A stretch of DNA of 64,000 bases from Octopus bimaculoides (lineage: Eukaryota): contig NC_068983.1 in NCBI RefSeq assembly GCF_001194135.2, positions 155,140,465 through 155,204,464 on the forward strand, read 5' to 3'. The notes below the pieces were generated by a model. That model saw only the letters and a program-made list of their open reading frames with translations, was not told where the DNA came from and did not search any database. A program made the translations under genes and the position numbers. Position 1 is the stretch's first letter. Every line of letters starts with the position of its first letter. Shown in pieces: positions 1 through 62,931 of the stretch.

Positions 1-649
1 ATGCACACGTGTACACATACACATATTTATATACATACGTGCATATGTGTATATATATACACACACACAATACATATATTATTAATATACATGTTTGTGT
101 GTATTGCCAATGGGTTTGCATTTATTTCTATACATGCATGCGAATGTGAGGATGTTTATACACACACACTTGGTTTTGTGTACATGAAACTATAAACACA
201 TTTGCAATATACACGCATGCCTTCATATATGCATTCAGTGGGCATTATATGAATGTGGGTGTACTTGTTAATTGCATAAGTGACATGAGCAATGGAGTTT
301 TAATTTGATATTGGTACCAGGTTGGGAATTTGGTTTCCTGGGAGAGTTTAAGGTGTTTGCCAATGCACATATTACAAAAATACAACAACAATAATAAAAA
401 ATATAAATCATTGCATTAATAATGATGATGATAATGATGATGATTATTTATATTTGCCACCAGGGCAAGGGATGAGAATACATTACAAAAATACATGATA
501 AAAATCAGTGGGATTTGGCACTGAATTGATTATAAAAAGTATGAAATGAGAAGTTCCAGTAGAAGAACACTCATCTGGGCCCAATCAAAGAACTCTTTAG
601 ATTTATGATTGCCTCTCCTAGCTGTGTTCGCTACCCTAACTGTTTATTA

Positions 650-22790: not shown

Positions 22791-22792
<2 letters not shown>

Positions 22793-22957
22793 GCGCAGGA
22801 GTGGCTGTGTGGTAAGTAGCTTGGTTACAAACCACATGGTTCCAGGTTCAGTTCCACTGCGTGGCACCTTGGGCAAGTGTCTTGTACTATAGGCTAGGGC
22901 CGACCAAAGCCTTGTGAGTGGATTTGGTAGACGGAAACTGAAAGAAGCCCATCGTAT
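22791..22957 (+). mobile_element. SINE T1 5' half inserted after (AT)n
   Basis: Near-identical to the head of 3316. Followed by an inverted T1 tail (22992-23040) and an older T1 body (23041-23295). Confidence 0.8.
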
Positions 22958-24298
22958 ATACATATATGTATATGTGATTTTGTTATATATATACTCTTTT
23001 ACTTGTTTCAGTCATTTGACTGTGGCCATGCTGGAGCACTATTATCTCGGTCCAAGCAATGTCTTGTGACTGAATTTGATTGACAGAAACTTTGTGGAAG
23101 TCCATTGAATGTATATAGATATATGTGTATGTGTGTGTCTTTGTGTTTATTTACATCCTGGTAACTTAGTGGTTGAGTAAAGAAGTCAATGAAATAAGTA
23201 CCAGGGTTTTAAAAAAAAAGAAGTTTCGGGGTTGATATGCTTGACTCAACACTTCAACATGATGCCCCAGCATGGCTGCAGTTCAATGACTGAAATCATT
23301 GTTGTCATCCTTTAACATCTGCTTTCCATGCTGGCATGTGTTGGATAGTTTGTCAAGAGCTGGTGAGCCAAAGGACTGCATCAAACTCTATTATCTGCTT
23401 TAGGCATGGCCTCTATAGCTTGATGCCCTTCTTAATGTTAACCTCTTTGCAACATGAACTGGGTGTTTTTTTTACACGGTACCATCACCAATGAGGTAGT
23501 CAAATAACTTGCAAGATGTGAGACCTTTCATTTGAGTAGGGGGTAGTATTGAGGGAAGTGGTTTCGTATAGGGCAATAAGTTGACAAGCGGGACATAAAC
23601 AGGTGTTTTTAAGTAGCATGGCTACCTGAACTGGAAAAGGGGAGAGAGAGAGAGAGAGAGGTAGTGAAGATGATGTGCCAAGGTATAACGTTAAGTTACA
23701 GGGAGGTGAATTTAAGTGAAGAGGTAAGGAAGATTGGGCTAGGATAAGTGGGAAGGTGTACTGTATATAATGTAGTTTAAAGATTATATTCAAGACTCAA
23801 TATCTATAATGTTAGAGTGAATAAACATTGTTATAAATAATTTAATTGTACAACTGTAGGATATATTGATACATGTATATATATATATATATCATCACCA
23901 TCATCATATGTCTGCTTTCCATGCTGGCATGGGTTGGACGGTTTGACTGAGGTCTGGCAAGCCAGGAGGCTGCACCAAGCTCCAATCTGGTCTGGCAAGG
24001 TTTCTACAGCTGGATGCCCTTCCTAACACCTATTTTATATATATTTCGCTTAAGCATTGCAATACTAACAACCTCATTTAGAACTCAATATACATAAGCT
24101 TCAGAATGAAGCGTTAATCAAACACATGTTGGTAATATGGAAAATGAGATGACGAAGAAATAAACAATTATCGTGTGAGGTTCATTAGCTGCATGTTGTA
24201 GCAGAAACAGCTGTAAGCTAATGAAGTTCCTAAGATAATTGTTTGCTTGTGCATATGTATGTAGAAATGAGTTTATATATGTAATATGTATATATATA

Positions 24299-30330: not shown

Positions 30331-30615
30331 CTGAATGGTATTTCAACATGGATCACAAATCATTTATGCCTTTATGGAAACCTGCCGAAAGTTAGCAAGA
30401 AGATCAGGCAAAGACGGCTGCGACTATCTGGTCACTGTGTGCACCACCCTGAATTGGAAGCATCCGAACTAGTCTAGTGGAACCCACTTCATGGTGATAA
30501 TGTAAGAAGAGGAAAACATCATCACACTTATATCGACAACTTGATTTCAGACACTGCCCTGGGATGTATCCAGGACCTTGAGGCAGTGATGTTGGACCAA
30601 AAAGTGTGGTGGGTG
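30331..30615 (+). pseudogene. RTE-type LINE ORF2 C-terminal fragment
   Basis: In one frame LNGISTWITNHLCLYGNLPKVSKKIRQRRLRLSGHCVHHPELEASELV*WNPLHG..RRGKHHHTYIDNLISDT...DQKVW, the typical post-RT RRLRxxGH...WxPxHG..RG...YID motif string. Confidence 0.85.
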
Positions 30616-38622: not shown

Positions 38623-38815
38623 TGGAGGCACATGGCCTAGTGGTTGGAGCAGTGGACTCACAGTCGAAGGATCGTGGGTTCGAATCTCAGACCGGATGAC
38701 GTGTGGGTTTATGAGCGAAATACCTAAGCTCCACGCGGCTCCAGCAGATGGTAATGGCGAACTTCTGCTGACTCTTTCACCACAACCTTCTCTCATTCTT
38801 TCTTCCTGCATCTAG
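38623..38815 (+). mobile_element. T3-related SINE, 3'-truncated
   Basis: tggaggcacatggcctagtggtt...gggttcgaatctc, colinear with the 5' half of the T3 copies. Confidence 0.75.
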
Positions 38816-48991: not shown

Positions 48992-49310
48992 GTGAGAAAA
49001 TTGCTCAAGCACTTGTATTCTTGTTTCCCTCTTCAATTCATAAAGAAAACTCTTTTTTTTTTATCTATGAATAATCATTGTTGATTTTGTTATTGCTGTA
49101 AGGCTAAGGTAACAATACCCAGGACTATACCTGGCCTGGCATGATACTGGTTTGACTCATCTCTGTGCTAAGCCTTCCTGTGATTCAGAATTCTCCCTTA
49201 TATGAAATGATCCAATCTAATACAGTTCTATATTTAAGAGATGAGGAATTATTTACATTATTTACATTATTTACATTTGACGAATATTTGTCCTCATCTT
49301 GTTTGTTGTT

Positions 49311-49356
49311 AACACAACGTTTCGGCTGATATACCCTCCAGCCTTCGTCAGGTGTC
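49311..49356 (-). ncRNA. Type I minimal hammerhead ribozyme, inverted copy
   Basis: Exact reverse complement of 49699-49744. Confidence 0.82.
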
Positions 49357-49537
49357 TTGGGGAAATTTCGAACCTGGGTTCTCATTCCTAACGATGTTAC
49401 TATTATTATATTATTATTATTATTATTACTATTATTAATCAGGTAGCTGCAGTGAATAATAGATTACTATTATTAATCAGGTTGCTGCCGTGAATAATAG
49501 ATTTATAAGCCTTAAAATTCACCCCATAATTGCCCAC

Positions 49538-49613
49538 GGGCGTATGGCGTAGTGGTTAAAAGCGCTGGTTACTAACCCCAAGGTTCCGAGTTCGATTCAC
49601 TGCAGCGACCTGA
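49538..49613 (+). promoter_or_regulatory. tRNA-derived SINE head with Pol III A and B boxes
   Basis: GGGCGTATGGCGTAGTGGTTAA...GAGTTCGATTC: A box TGGCGTAGTGG 49545-49555, B box GTTCGATTC 49590-49598. The acceptor stem is degenerate, so this is not a functional tRNA. Confidence 0.8.
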
Positions 49614-49698
49614 TTAATAATAGTAATAATAATAATAATAATATAATAATAATAGTAACATCGTTAGGAATGAGAACCCAGGTTCGAAATTTCCCCAA

Positions 49699-49744
49699 GA
49701 CACCTGACGAAGGCTGGAGGGTATATCAGCCGAAACGTTGTGTT
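49699..49744 (+). ncRNA. Type I minimal hammerhead ribozyme (Penelope-like)
   Basis: Stem I GACAC/GTGTT; core CTGACGA plus one extra A; stem II GGCTG-10 nt loop-CAGCC; GAAA; palindromic stem III ACGT; predicted cleavage after GTT at 49739. Confidence 0.82.
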
Positions 49745-50263
49745 AACAACAAACAAGATGAGGACAAATATCCGTCAAATGTAAATAATGTAAAAAAAAT
49801 GATCCACTCTAATTTTCTGGAAATATATACCATATCATGGTGAAAAAAATTGTGTTATTAAACTCCATGTCTGTTCTGATCTAGCAAGCTTATTATGAAA
49901 GCTGACAGTCTTATCATTTAGGCATTGCATATCTTAAACTATATTATCCAGTGTACTTTCAAAAGTGATAGAGTTTAATTCCCCAACATTTGATTACTAT
50001 TTACGATAGAGGAAACTACTATCTTTATTGGCTCATTACAGTTGATGTTGTGTAACCCAAGGTAAACACTGCTCAAGTAAACCTGTGATCATAGTTATTC
50101 TTGCTGCAACCATCCCATTGTTTCTAGTCATACTGTATCTTGGACTAAAGGGTATAGCATCTAATGTATTCTGCCATTTTTAAGTGTGATTTGAGAGATT
50201 TTGGTTGCTGCTTCTAGCAGGCCTAAGGACAATGCAGAGGCTCTCATTTTGGCATGTTATTAT

Positions 50264-55597: not shown

Positions 55598-55715
55598 AGA
55601 ATTCACTTAAATTTTTGAGTGACTCTAACATTCGCATGTAGACATATTGATATAAACACATACTGCGACATAGTTATACAAATACAGCTGATTTCAAAAG
55701 CAGCCATTTTTAGTG

Positions 55716-55775
55716 TAAGGGTTAGGGTTAGGGTTAGGGTTAGGGTTAGGGTTAGGGTTAGGGTTAGGGTTAGGG
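55716..55775 (+). repeat. Interstitial telomeric repeat (TTAGGG)9 plus one degenerate unit
   Basis: Nine perfect TTAGGG units at 55722-55775, preceded by TAAGGG. Confidence 0.95.
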
Positions 55776-61671: not shown

Positions 61672-62034
61672 GAGGAGGTGCAATGGCCCAGTGGTTAGGG
61701 CAGCGGACTCGCGGTCATAAGATCGCGGTTTTGATTCCCAGACCGGGCGTTGTGAGTGTTTATTGAGCGAAAACACCTAAAGCTCCACGAGGCTCCGGCA
61801 GGGGATGGTGGCGAACCCTGCTGTACTCTTTCACCACAACTTCTGTTGTACCTGTATTTCAAAGGGCCAGCCTTGTCACACTGTGTCACGCTGAATATCC
61901 CCGAGAACTACGTTAAGGGTACATGTGTCTGTGGAGTGCTCAGCCACTTGCACGTTAATTTCATGAGCAGGCTGTTCCGTTGATCGGATCAACAGGAACC
62001 CTTGACGTTGTAAGCGATGGAGTGCCAACAACAA
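61672..62034 (+). mobile_element. SINE family T3, full length
   Basis: Colinear with 32068-32454 apart from a ~25-bp internal deletion. 9-bp TSD cttatcata at 61663-61671 and 62035-62043. Confidence 0.9.
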
Positions 62035-62125: not shown

Positions 62126-62745
62126 TGCAATAGATGCACAGAAGTAGTTTGTGCTGAGAGTGCCTATGGAATAAATTTTCAAATTCTTAAGGGTTCCCTA
62201 GAAGTAATTGTTAAAGACTTTTTTCCGAGGTTACTACATTAACAGTTGATAGTTCTAGGAGCATAAGAGCCAGGAACTATCATTGCTTCTACTAGCAATG
62301 AAAGGATTCCTTTTCCAAATGAAGGAAGGATATAATTTTATGATGCATGTATACAGTTTGTGTTGTTACATCATAGTGAACATTGCCATTGAATATAGAG
62401 GCTGTTAATAAAAGCTGGAAAGATATAAAGTAAACATGTTATAATGTATAATGTTAGTGTGCCTGAATGTTCAAATACAAATGAGCTGAATCAAAAGTTG
62501 GATGGGAAAGGTATTAGATGCAGTGTGCAAGAGAGAAGACTGTGCTGGTACAAATGCATGATGCATTTCGAGGATGATATTTGGTTACAGAAGTGCCTAG
62601 CAATCGAAGTAGAAGAGAGTTGCAGAAGAGAAATGACAAAAGACCACAACAAATAGTGAGATGTTGTGCTGGAGAAGACCCATCCAACCCATGAAAGCAA
62701 GGAAAAACAGATATTGAATAATAATGATGGTTGTGGTTGGTGGTA
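62126..62745 (+). pseudogene. RTE LINE ORF2 C-terminal remnant with tail
   Basis: QELSLLLLAMKGF.. / YDACIQFVLLHHSE / MYNVSV...GIRCSVQERRLCWY..MMHFEDD...KC..IEVEESCRR, then ..LEKTHPTH running directly into the tail module. Confidence 0.82.
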
Positions 62746-62829
62746 ATGATAACAATGTGCATATAATAATAATAATGTTAATAATAATAATAATTATGTA
62801 AATATTACCTTCTATTATGTCATTAACAG

Positions 62830-62931
62830 AATTGTCAGAACTACATACGTGTTATTGCCCTTAATGAGACGAATTTGTTTGTTTGTGGCACCAATGCATT
62901 TAAGCCTATTTGTCGGTCCTATGATATTGAG
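62830..62931 (+). CDS. Sema1a: Semaphorin coding exon (102 nt)
   Basis: Acceptor ttaacAG, donor GAG|gtaagt. Reads NCQNYIRVIALNETNLFVCGTNAFKPICRSYDIE, containing the hallmark sema motifs CQNYIRV and CGTNAFKPxCR. The gene continues past the window. Confidence 0.96.

Follow-up and report, generated by a model that had tools for sequence, protein, structure and literature searches.

A tRNA-headed short retroposon with a Penelope-type hammerhead motif in Octopus bimaculoides and its probable mobilisation by Penelope-like elements

Short retroposons depend on the machinery of other elements, and the scars left by an insertion can be informative about which machinery was used. We analysed a stretch of 64,000 nucleotides of the Octopus bimaculoides genome (contig NC_068983.1, positions 155,140,465 to 155,204,464 of the forward strand; hereafter the window, with positions counted from its first letter) and describe in it a compound locus that is probably one insertion of a non-autonomous, two-module retroposon, namely a tRNA-derived short interspersed nuclear element (SINE) mobilised by a Penelope-like element (PLE). 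The element is ~260 nt long, or ~296 nt with its tail. Its first module would be a tRNA-derived head of ~74 nt with intact A and B boxes, kin to the head of an abundant octopus tRNA-SINE. The second, which follows a (TAA)n linker, would be a 3' module of ~140-180 nt that resembles the unit junction, or pseudo-long terminal repeat (pseudo-LTR), of a PLE and carries a hammerhead ribozyme motif, with 3' ends 55 and 94 nt further on. The window as a whole has a GC content of ~35%, contains numerous microsatellites and is interrupted by 13 assembly gaps.

The insertion is a near-perfect inverted repeat that takes in the whole region around the forward copy of the hammerhead SINE. On its left it is bounded by one copy of a target-site duplication (49205-49221, AAATGATCCAATCTAAT), a direct repeat of the right copy at 49797-49813 (AAATGATCCACTCTAAT) with 16 of 17 positions identical. 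Next to the left copy lies a 39-nt 3' tail on the reverse strand, present in the inverted copy only (49222-49260; on its own strand TAATGTAAATAATTCCTCATCTCTTAAATATAGAACTGT), followed by the inverted, 5'-truncated copy itself (49261-49457, reverse strand). Of the head, this copy retains only the terminal ~17 nt; linker and 3' module, including the hammerhead (49311-49356, reverse strand), are present, and the copy aligns to 49595-49794. At its inner, truncated end a 38-nt unit occurs twice in tandem (49425-49500, reverse strand; 95% identity between the units), and the inverted copy, including the tail and the inner tandem units, spans 49222-49500. A junction or filler of 37 nt without match elsewhere in the window (49501-49537) separates it from the full-length copy on the forward strand, which consists of the tRNA-like head (49538-49611), the (TAA)n-rich linker (49612-49655) and the PLE-like 3' module (49656-49796). 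The last is made up of 43 nt before the hammerhead, the hammerhead (49699-49744, predicted cut between 49739 and 49740), an AC-rich stretch and (TGTAAATAA)n repeats, with the short-form 3' end at 49794-49796; the forward copy ends in ...AATGTAAA(AA), without the 39-nt tail. Both copies have the linker, the lengths of which differ by 3 nt, and over 200 aligned columns the two copies differ by two substitutions and one 3-nt indel (99% identity), with identical hammerheads. In a BLAST search of the window, head, 3' module and tail had no additional copies.

The single 17-bp target-site duplication encloses both head-to-head copies, and both 3' ends point outward. Since the direct repeat flanks the entire two-copy structure, the structure arose in one insertion event, and since the truncated copy also holds the head-linker junction, head and tail were joined in one template RNA. 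From an RNA with head, linker, hammerhead and tail, a single event produced two outward cDNA copies with two 3' start points, inside one staggered cut of ~14-17 bp in AT-rich DNA. Other origins were considered for this arrangement and rejected: twin priming by a long interspersed nuclear element (LINE), as both arms carry the 3' end; inverted duplication of DNA, as the flanking repeat is direct whereas the flank would be inverted too; and two separate insertions, as there is one target-site duplication instead of two.

Scars of this kind are known from PLEs. An inverted 5'-truncated copy beside a forward copy and a tail of 30-40 bp at one end only have been described for PLE insertions (Craig et al., PMC8557442, section 6, Fig. 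2), and the PLE Poseidon_Ac cleaves and extends both DNA strands, preferring AT-rich ATT sites (Frangieh et al., PMC11167929). Reverse transcription by Poseidon_Ac starts at two internal sites, the spacing between which is the tail (PMC11167929). The octopus tail of 39 nt fits the optional 30-40 bp tail of PLEs (PMC8557442, PMC11167929), and the boundaries of the target-site duplication, where the top strand reads CTAAT^TTTC and the bottom strand CATTT^CAT, are compatible with the ATT preference, but ATT is common in DNA of 35% GC.

The same compound layout was found in a weevil PLE that encodes a reverse transcriptase (RT), locus L005 of Sitophilus oryzae (PPTJ02000576.1), in which the order of parts is shared with the octopus locus: duplication, tail, inverted truncated copy, junction with a small tandem duplication, forward copy, duplication. 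The target-site duplication measures 13 bp in the weevil (AATATTTTGTGTT) and 17 bp in the octopus; the tail, borne by the inverted copy only, 30 and 39 nt; and the tandem duplication at the junction, 11 and 38 nt. From the hammerhead cut site to the short 3' end the distance is 56 nt in the weevil and 55-57 nt in the octopus, and to the tailed 3' end it is 86 and 94 nt. The two loci differ at the 5' side of the forward copy, which begins within 2 nt of the hammerhead cut site in the weevil whereas the octopus unit begins at the tRNA-like head, and in coding capacity, the weevil element having an RT open reading frame (ORF) of 761 aa and the octopus unit being non-coding and ~260-300 nt long. 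As judged from this sequence comparison, the insertion scars of the octopus locus are of the PLE type. An initial annotation, made from the letters of the window, had already proposed mobilisation by PLE machinery rather than by a LINE; it had overlooked the inverted 5'-truncated twin (49222-49500), the 17-bp target-site duplication and the one-sided 39-nt tail, and these scars (one duplication, two head-to-head copies, a tail on one side) now support its proposal.

Other copies of the element were sought with a protein query made from the stop-free sense frame across it. This search found database relatives of the hammerhead SINE in Octopus bimaculoides only, as two proteins (P0001 and P0002) that match the 3' part of the element; the other five frames gave no match in the protein database, and a SINE-specific 19-mer was absent from GTDB genomes and viral contigs. 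P0001 (UniRef A0A0L8FV75, 51 aa) extends from the hammerhead region through the 3' repeats and the tail ('...NVNNVHNSSSLKYRTI', the tail being encoded as '...NSSSLKYRTI') and then diverges at the element end. The 39-nt tail recurs in this independent copy and is therefore element sequence and not flank, and the short and tailed ends at the locus, together with P0001, imply that two alternative 3' ends exist in the family. The second protein, P0002, is annotated as dystrobrevin beta isoform X1 (GCA_001194135.2); its first ~32 residues (MPMGIWHSGEGWRVYQPKCCVNNKQDEDKYPS...) come from the hammerhead region of another copy, exonised as an alternative first coding exon, so that family members can affect host transcripts. 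In both proteins substitutions at hammerhead positions are indicated by amino-acid changes, for example R to S or C at helix III CGU, which the decay of old copies would explain.

The two 3' ends bear on a reading in which the element is a tRNA-SINE mobilised by a LINE, with (TGTAAATAA)n as a tail of the stringent type, the hammerhead as a fortuitous feature or a relic, and the inverted twin as a product of twin priming or of later rearrangement. Short tandem repeats at the 3' end that vary in number between copies are typical of SINEs partnered by L2/CR1 elements, and RTE-like LINE fragments are present in the window. The latter are two stop-free frames on the forward strand (30412-30564 and 62510-62614) with what we take to be the C-terminal motif pattern of RTE-type LINE proteins (...RRLRLSGHCVHH..., ...WNPLHGDNVRRGKHHHTYIDNL..., ...RRLCWYKCMMHFEDD...); neither has a Pfam match at E<=0.01. 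However, two independent copies run 27-39 nt beyond the repeats with the same sequence, so that there are two alternative 3' ends as in PLEs. Twin priming, moreover, inverts the upstream part of one RNA and does not yield two copies with outward 3' ends, an inverted DNA duplication would also invert the flank whereas the flanking repeat is direct, and the hammerhead keeps all invariant core bases and matches a model built from PLEs only. We consider LINE mobilisation very improbable.

The hammerhead itself was examined at the level of sequence and predicted structure. The forward motif (49699-49744) reads GACAC-CUGACGA-A-GGCUGG(8-nt loop)UCAGCC-GAAA-CG-UU|GUGUU, with a helix I of 5 bp, a helix II (GGCUGG/UCAGCC) of 6 bp closed by an 8-nt loop, an extra A at 49711 and U at position 17. 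The core CUGACGA ... GAAA-CG-U-U| keeps every invariant base in both copies, and position 17 is not G in either. One unpaired nucleotide (the A) lies between A9 and G10.1, where PLE-adjacent hammerheads have an extra U, and the pair G10.1-C11.1 closes the long helix II. The palindrome ACGU at 49735-49738 stands in place of a looped helix III; being loop-less and palindromic, helix III cannot be closed by a monomer and can pair only between two copies. A cofolded dimer was 4 kcal/mol better than two monomers, a difference that is weakly informative. Our own structural descriptor for minimal hammerhead ribozymes (min-HHRs) had exactly two matches in the window, at 49699-49744 on the forward strand and 49311-49356 on the reverse strand, and none in 300 dinucleotide shuffles. 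Among the four features of PLE min-HHRs that played no part in the published descriptor (Cervera & de la Pena 2014, PMC4209133) are the G10.1-C11.1 pair, the palindromic 15.2-16.2 and the combination of a long helix II with a short helix I, and all four are present in the octopus hammerhead.

Comparison with covariance models gave a divided outcome for the Infernal scoring that the initial annotation had put forward. The Rfam models Hammerhead_1, _3, HH9, HH10 and II had no match at gathering score in the window nor at E<=10 in 49200-49900; such a miss is expected of a motif that lacks helix III, and it is uninformative for loop-less hammerheads. By contrast, model R1, a covariance model for which only hammerheads next to PLE ORFs were used in training (two copies in locus L004, those of L005 and Poseidon_Ac), gave 23.3 bits to both octopus copies, with an E value of about 3e-5 on a rough calibration, the next match in the window reaching 11.9 bits; a PLE held out from training, L006, scored 28.2 bits. 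The three PLE loci were fetched with the Poseidon_Ac protein (supplement of PMC11167929) as seed, and in L004, L005 and L006 alike the same motif stands right beside the RT ORF, as in the example CCU-CUGAAGA-U-GCUAGC...GCUAGC-GAAA-CG-UU|AGG; the hammerhead of Poseidon_Ac has the architecture seen in the octopus. The predicted octopus hammerhead is of the Penelope (PLE) minimal type.

In L004 (2375-2417 and 4937-4979) and at the unit junction of Poseidon_Ac, the extra U forms, with A9 and G10.1, the ATG of the RT ORF (CUGANGA-U-G), so that the ribozyme core and the start codon overlap. Scanning with the hammerhead pattern gave no match among viral contigs and, in metagenomes, matches in L001-L003, three loci without relation to the element that resemble the octopus motif in core and stem II but have no PLE ORF; L001 and L002 have G at position 17 and low R1 scores.

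Upstream of the (TAA)n linker, the head has the features expected of an internal RNA polymerase III (Pol III) promoter. Its A box (TGGCGTAGTGG, 49545-49555) matches TRGCNNAGTGG at 11 of 11 positions and its B box (AGTTCGATTCA, 49588-49598) matches GGTTCGANNCC at 9 of 11, the B box starting 43 nt after the A box, which is the spacing of a tRNA. The composite of both boxes occurs twice in the window, in the hammerhead SINE and in an unrelated tRNA-SINE at 38633, versus none in 100 dinucleotide shuffles. Within 49538-49796 there is no TTTT, and the earliest downstream run of four T (49813-49816, forward strand) lies just beyond the element, where it is the likely Pol III stop for the forward copy. 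These results bear out the initial annotation in its description and placement of an A box, a B box, a (TAA)n linker and a complete minimal type I hammerhead (composite 0/100 and descriptor 0/300 shuffles), in its statement that no run of four or more T interrupts the element from head to end, and in its assignment of the motif to the PLE type of minimal hammerhead, for which the four features of PMC4209133 and the R1 score of 23.3 bits now speak.

Kinship of the head with other octopus SINEs can be traced within the window. A 22-nt motif comprising the anticodon arm and the variable region (TGGTTACNAACCNCANGGTTCC) is common to the head and to three copies of the window's abundant SINE family, giving four matches in the window versus 0.02 expected. 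Alignment with the heads of these SINEs runs from ~49536-49540 to just beyond the B box, and the sequences are unrelated thereafter. The 5' limit of homology at 49536-49540 therefore coincides with tRNA position +1, the expected region of the Pol III start. The 37 nt upstream of the head (49501-49537) do not align with sequence upstream of the related SINE heads in the window and are not part of the shared SINE head.

The abundant family, which has copies at ~22791-22960 and ~9045 on the forward strand and ~46680 on the reverse strand (...GGCACCTTGGGCAAGTGTCTT...GACCAAAGCCTTGTGAGTGGATTTGG...), resembles the hammerhead SINE in the head, through the 22-nt motif, and in its 5' ends; beyond the B box it continues as GGCACCTTGGGCAAGTGTCTT..., without a hammerhead and without relation to the body of the hammerhead SINE. 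Its copy at 22791 directly follows an (AT)n microsatellite. Another tRNA-SINE family is represented at 38626-38800 (forward strand), with perfect A and B boxes (TGGCCTAGTGG ... GGTTCGAATC) and a body unrelated to the hammerhead element; a reading frame resembling that of this SINE occurs at 61698-61907 on the reverse strand. Outside the octopus, the metagenomic locus L002 (contig JGI24703J35330_11674934) carries a tRNA-like head (GGCACAGTGGTTAAGGCGCT...GGGTTCGATTCCC) with the anticodon-loop sequence TACTAA, as in the octopus head, ~290 nt upstream and on the same strand of a hammerhead-like motif, CUGACGA-A-GGCUG..CAGCC-GAAA-CGU (sites 616-663 and 293-331, reverse strand). This motif, which has G at position 17, reaches only 17.2 bits, and the interval between it and the head includes a T5 run. 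The arrangement may be a second combination of tRNA head and PLE hammerhead, in another animal, or a coincidence.

Several observations weigh against a PLE-mobilised tRNA-SINE. ARAGORN finds no tRNA in the head, Rfam gives no tRNA match either in a gathering-score scan of the whole window or in an E<=10 scan of 49200-49900, and the predicted fold of the head is no better than that of shuffled sequence (z = +1.27); the tRNA structure has been lost and the head is only promoter-like. Its likeness to the head of the major SINE is modest, at 54-62% over 68 columns. Head and hammerhead are seen together at one locus only, since P0001 and P0002 are short protein footprints of the 3' part and neither covers the head; the case rests on one very informative locus and two partial copies. 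Among the 120 listed of 4594 PLE proteins from the search seeded with Poseidon_Ac there is no Octopus entry, and a 3' end shared with an autonomous partner is hypothetical. The (TGTAAATAA)n repeats are a feature seen also in LINE-partnered SINEs, the proposal does not account for the 37 nt at 49501-49537, and if they belong to the forward copy, the start of that copy is not the Pol III start site. Pol III transcription and ribozyme cleavage are both putative.

In the main rival explanation there is no SINE at all: both arms would stem, by 5' truncation, from a longer PLE (either an autonomous one or an extended non-autonomous derivative) that happened to have an old tRNA-SINE fragment in its 3' untranslated region, and the head would be a passenger, with Pol III not involved. 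Most genomic copies of PLEs are indeed 5'-truncated and most min-HHRs are solo motifs (PMC4209133), the other known copies (P0001 and P0002) cover the 3' part alone, the head is degenerate as a tRNA, and 49501-49537 could be more element sequence upstream of it. Against this, homology of the forward copy to SINE heads starts at 49536-49540, at tRNA position +1, and the 37 nt upstream align with nothing; intact boxes A and B at the correct spacing, and the lack of any T4 run before the element end, are not what a decaying passenger would be expected to show. Nor is there a PLE coding remnant nearby: a tblastn search of the window with Poseidon_Ac and the PLE proteins retrieved with it gave no similarity at E<0.01, and no RT/GIY-YIG ORF is present. 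We regard a longer PLE as unlikely, if still deserving of serious consideration.

For the PLE-mobilised tRNA-SINE the following mechanism is proposed. Pol III would start at the head and, because no T4 run lies inside the element, would read through the hammerhead and stop at a T run in flanking DNA. An RT/GIY-YIG protein supplied by an autonomous PLE would bind the 3' module and nick both strands of an AT-rich target ~14-17 bp apart, and both nicks would prime reverse transcription, begun inside the RNA at either of two sites. The outcome would be a pair of head-to-head copies within one enclosing target-site duplication, one full-length and short-ended, the other 5'-truncated and tailed, and this structure can be read directly from the sequence. 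The hammerhead most likely came along within the module recognised by the RT, and its cleavage would be expected in trans dimers only and at a low rate. With a cut between 49739 and 49740 the priming region would lose the head, so that cleavage is probably dispensable or even limiting; in Poseidon_Ac, mutations in the hammerhead did not lower insertion in vitro (PMC11167929).

A different role for the hammerhead would follow if the element were retrozyme-like and spread by means of self-cleaved circular RNA from tandem copies, a cycle in which processing would rest chiefly on the hammerhead. Type I hammerheads are indeed found in metazoan non-LTR retrozymes, for which dependence on PLEs has been proposed (PMC7229834; bioRxiv 10.64898/2026.07.22.740005), and the core of the octopus hammerhead is intact. 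Yet neither the locus nor the rest of the window holds a head-to-tail tandem copy, the hammerhead belongs with the loop-less min-HHRs of PLEs and not with the canonical type of retrozymes, a single cut would part the promoter head from the 3' end, and the hammerhead mutants of Poseidon_Ac showed no reduced insertion in vitro (PMC11167929). We rate this explanation as the least probable of those considered, and the 'retrozyme hybrid' of the initial annotation is not upheld, there being no tandem head-to-tail copy and nothing that points to circles.

A more far-reaching version of the PLE-mobilised tRNA-SINE is offered here tentatively, as falling a little short of an even chance. Octopus genomes may hold a Pol III-driven tRNA-SINE family in which the LINE-derived tail has been swapped for a Penelope pseudo-LTR module, consisting of a hammerhead and two RT start sites, and which is copied by a PLE RT/GIY-YIG protein. 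In such a family the hammerhead might act only between two SINE RNAs as a dose-dependent brake, which at high transcript levels would cut between promoter head and priming tail, and the locus would represent the first SINE-PLE partnership documented by insertion scars.

An open frame at 62827-62922 (forward strand) encoding NYIRVIALNETNLFVCGTNAFKPICRSY matches the Sema domain of semaphorin-1A/6A in PDB (E 2e-7), with no Pfam match for this short piece. From this match, the SINE insertion is probably located within or next to a class 1/6-type semaphorin gene, ~13 kb upstream of that exon. Read-through RNA of 49258-49797 would form a near-perfect hairpin of ~200 bp. Inverted SINE pairs that form such hairpins are typical substrates of ADAR editing or of small-RNA production. 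An interstitial, telomere-like repeat of eleven TTAGGG units occupies 55710-55775.

By definition SINEs depend on LINEs, and to our knowledge SINE catalogues do not include a class partnered by PLEs. If the proposed partnership is true, PLEs are parasitised by a Pol III route too, the schistosome precedent discussed below becomes tied to PLEs by mechanism and not by analogy, and the large SINE expansion of octopus genomes has one more source. The element would also supply a compact natural substrate of ~180 nt for defining recognition by PLE reverse transcriptases, and would allow us to ask if mobilisation requires the conserved hammerhead, is indifferent to it or is inhibited by it. In our search of the literature, no report described a PLE tail on a tRNA-headed element, or a hammerhead SINE of any kind, in cephalopods.

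Among known systems, the min-HHRs of PLE pseudo-LTRs share the architecture of the octopus motif: CUGANGA, one extra nucleotide, G10.1-C11.1, a 6-bp helix II, GAAA, a palindromic ACGU and a helix I of 3-5 bp. In Poseidon-type PLEs (L004 and Poseidon_Ac) the extra nucleotide is a U within the ATG of the ORF, whereas in the octopus it is an A and no ORF follows; and PLE min-HHRs adjoin PLE coding sequence, whereas the sequence upstream of the octopus hammerhead is a tRNA-like head. Pairs of min-HHRs on opposite strands, 100-700 bp apart, have been described in Schistosoma (PMC4209133), and the octopus pair is ~385 bp apart. Metazoan non-LTR retrozymes are small non-autonomous elements with type I hammerheads, proposed to be users of PLE machinery (PMC7229834; PMC8969392). 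They resemble the octopus element in size, lack of autonomy and type of hammerhead, but occur in tandem with canonical hammerheads, pass through circular RNA intermediates and lack a Pol III head, and neither tandem copies nor a canonical hammerhead are seen at the octopus locus.

The closest precedent is the Sm-alpha/Sj-alpha family of Schistosoma. Copies of Sm-alpha have been called as tRNA-Gln pseudogenes, and the family is described as a tRNA-Gln-derived SINE with a hammerhead (PMC2770079), which confirms it as the precedent for a SINE-like hammerhead repeat that the initial annotation had named. Sm-alpha is reported to be transcribed by Pol III and to cleave in cis or in trans (PMC6765202). 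Like the octopus element, Sm-alpha/Sj-alpha is a short non-coding retroposon in which a tRNA-derived Pol III head precedes a hammerhead, the likeness being one of architecture and drawn from published descriptions. The two differ in the ribozyme, which in Sm-alpha is a canonical hammerhead of type I that has loops and a helix III and is detectable by homology search with Rfam motifs, and in the octopus is a loop-less PLE min-HHR without Rfam match. They differ also in arrangement, Sm-alpha being often tandem whereas the octopus element is dispersed and bears explicit PLE scars.

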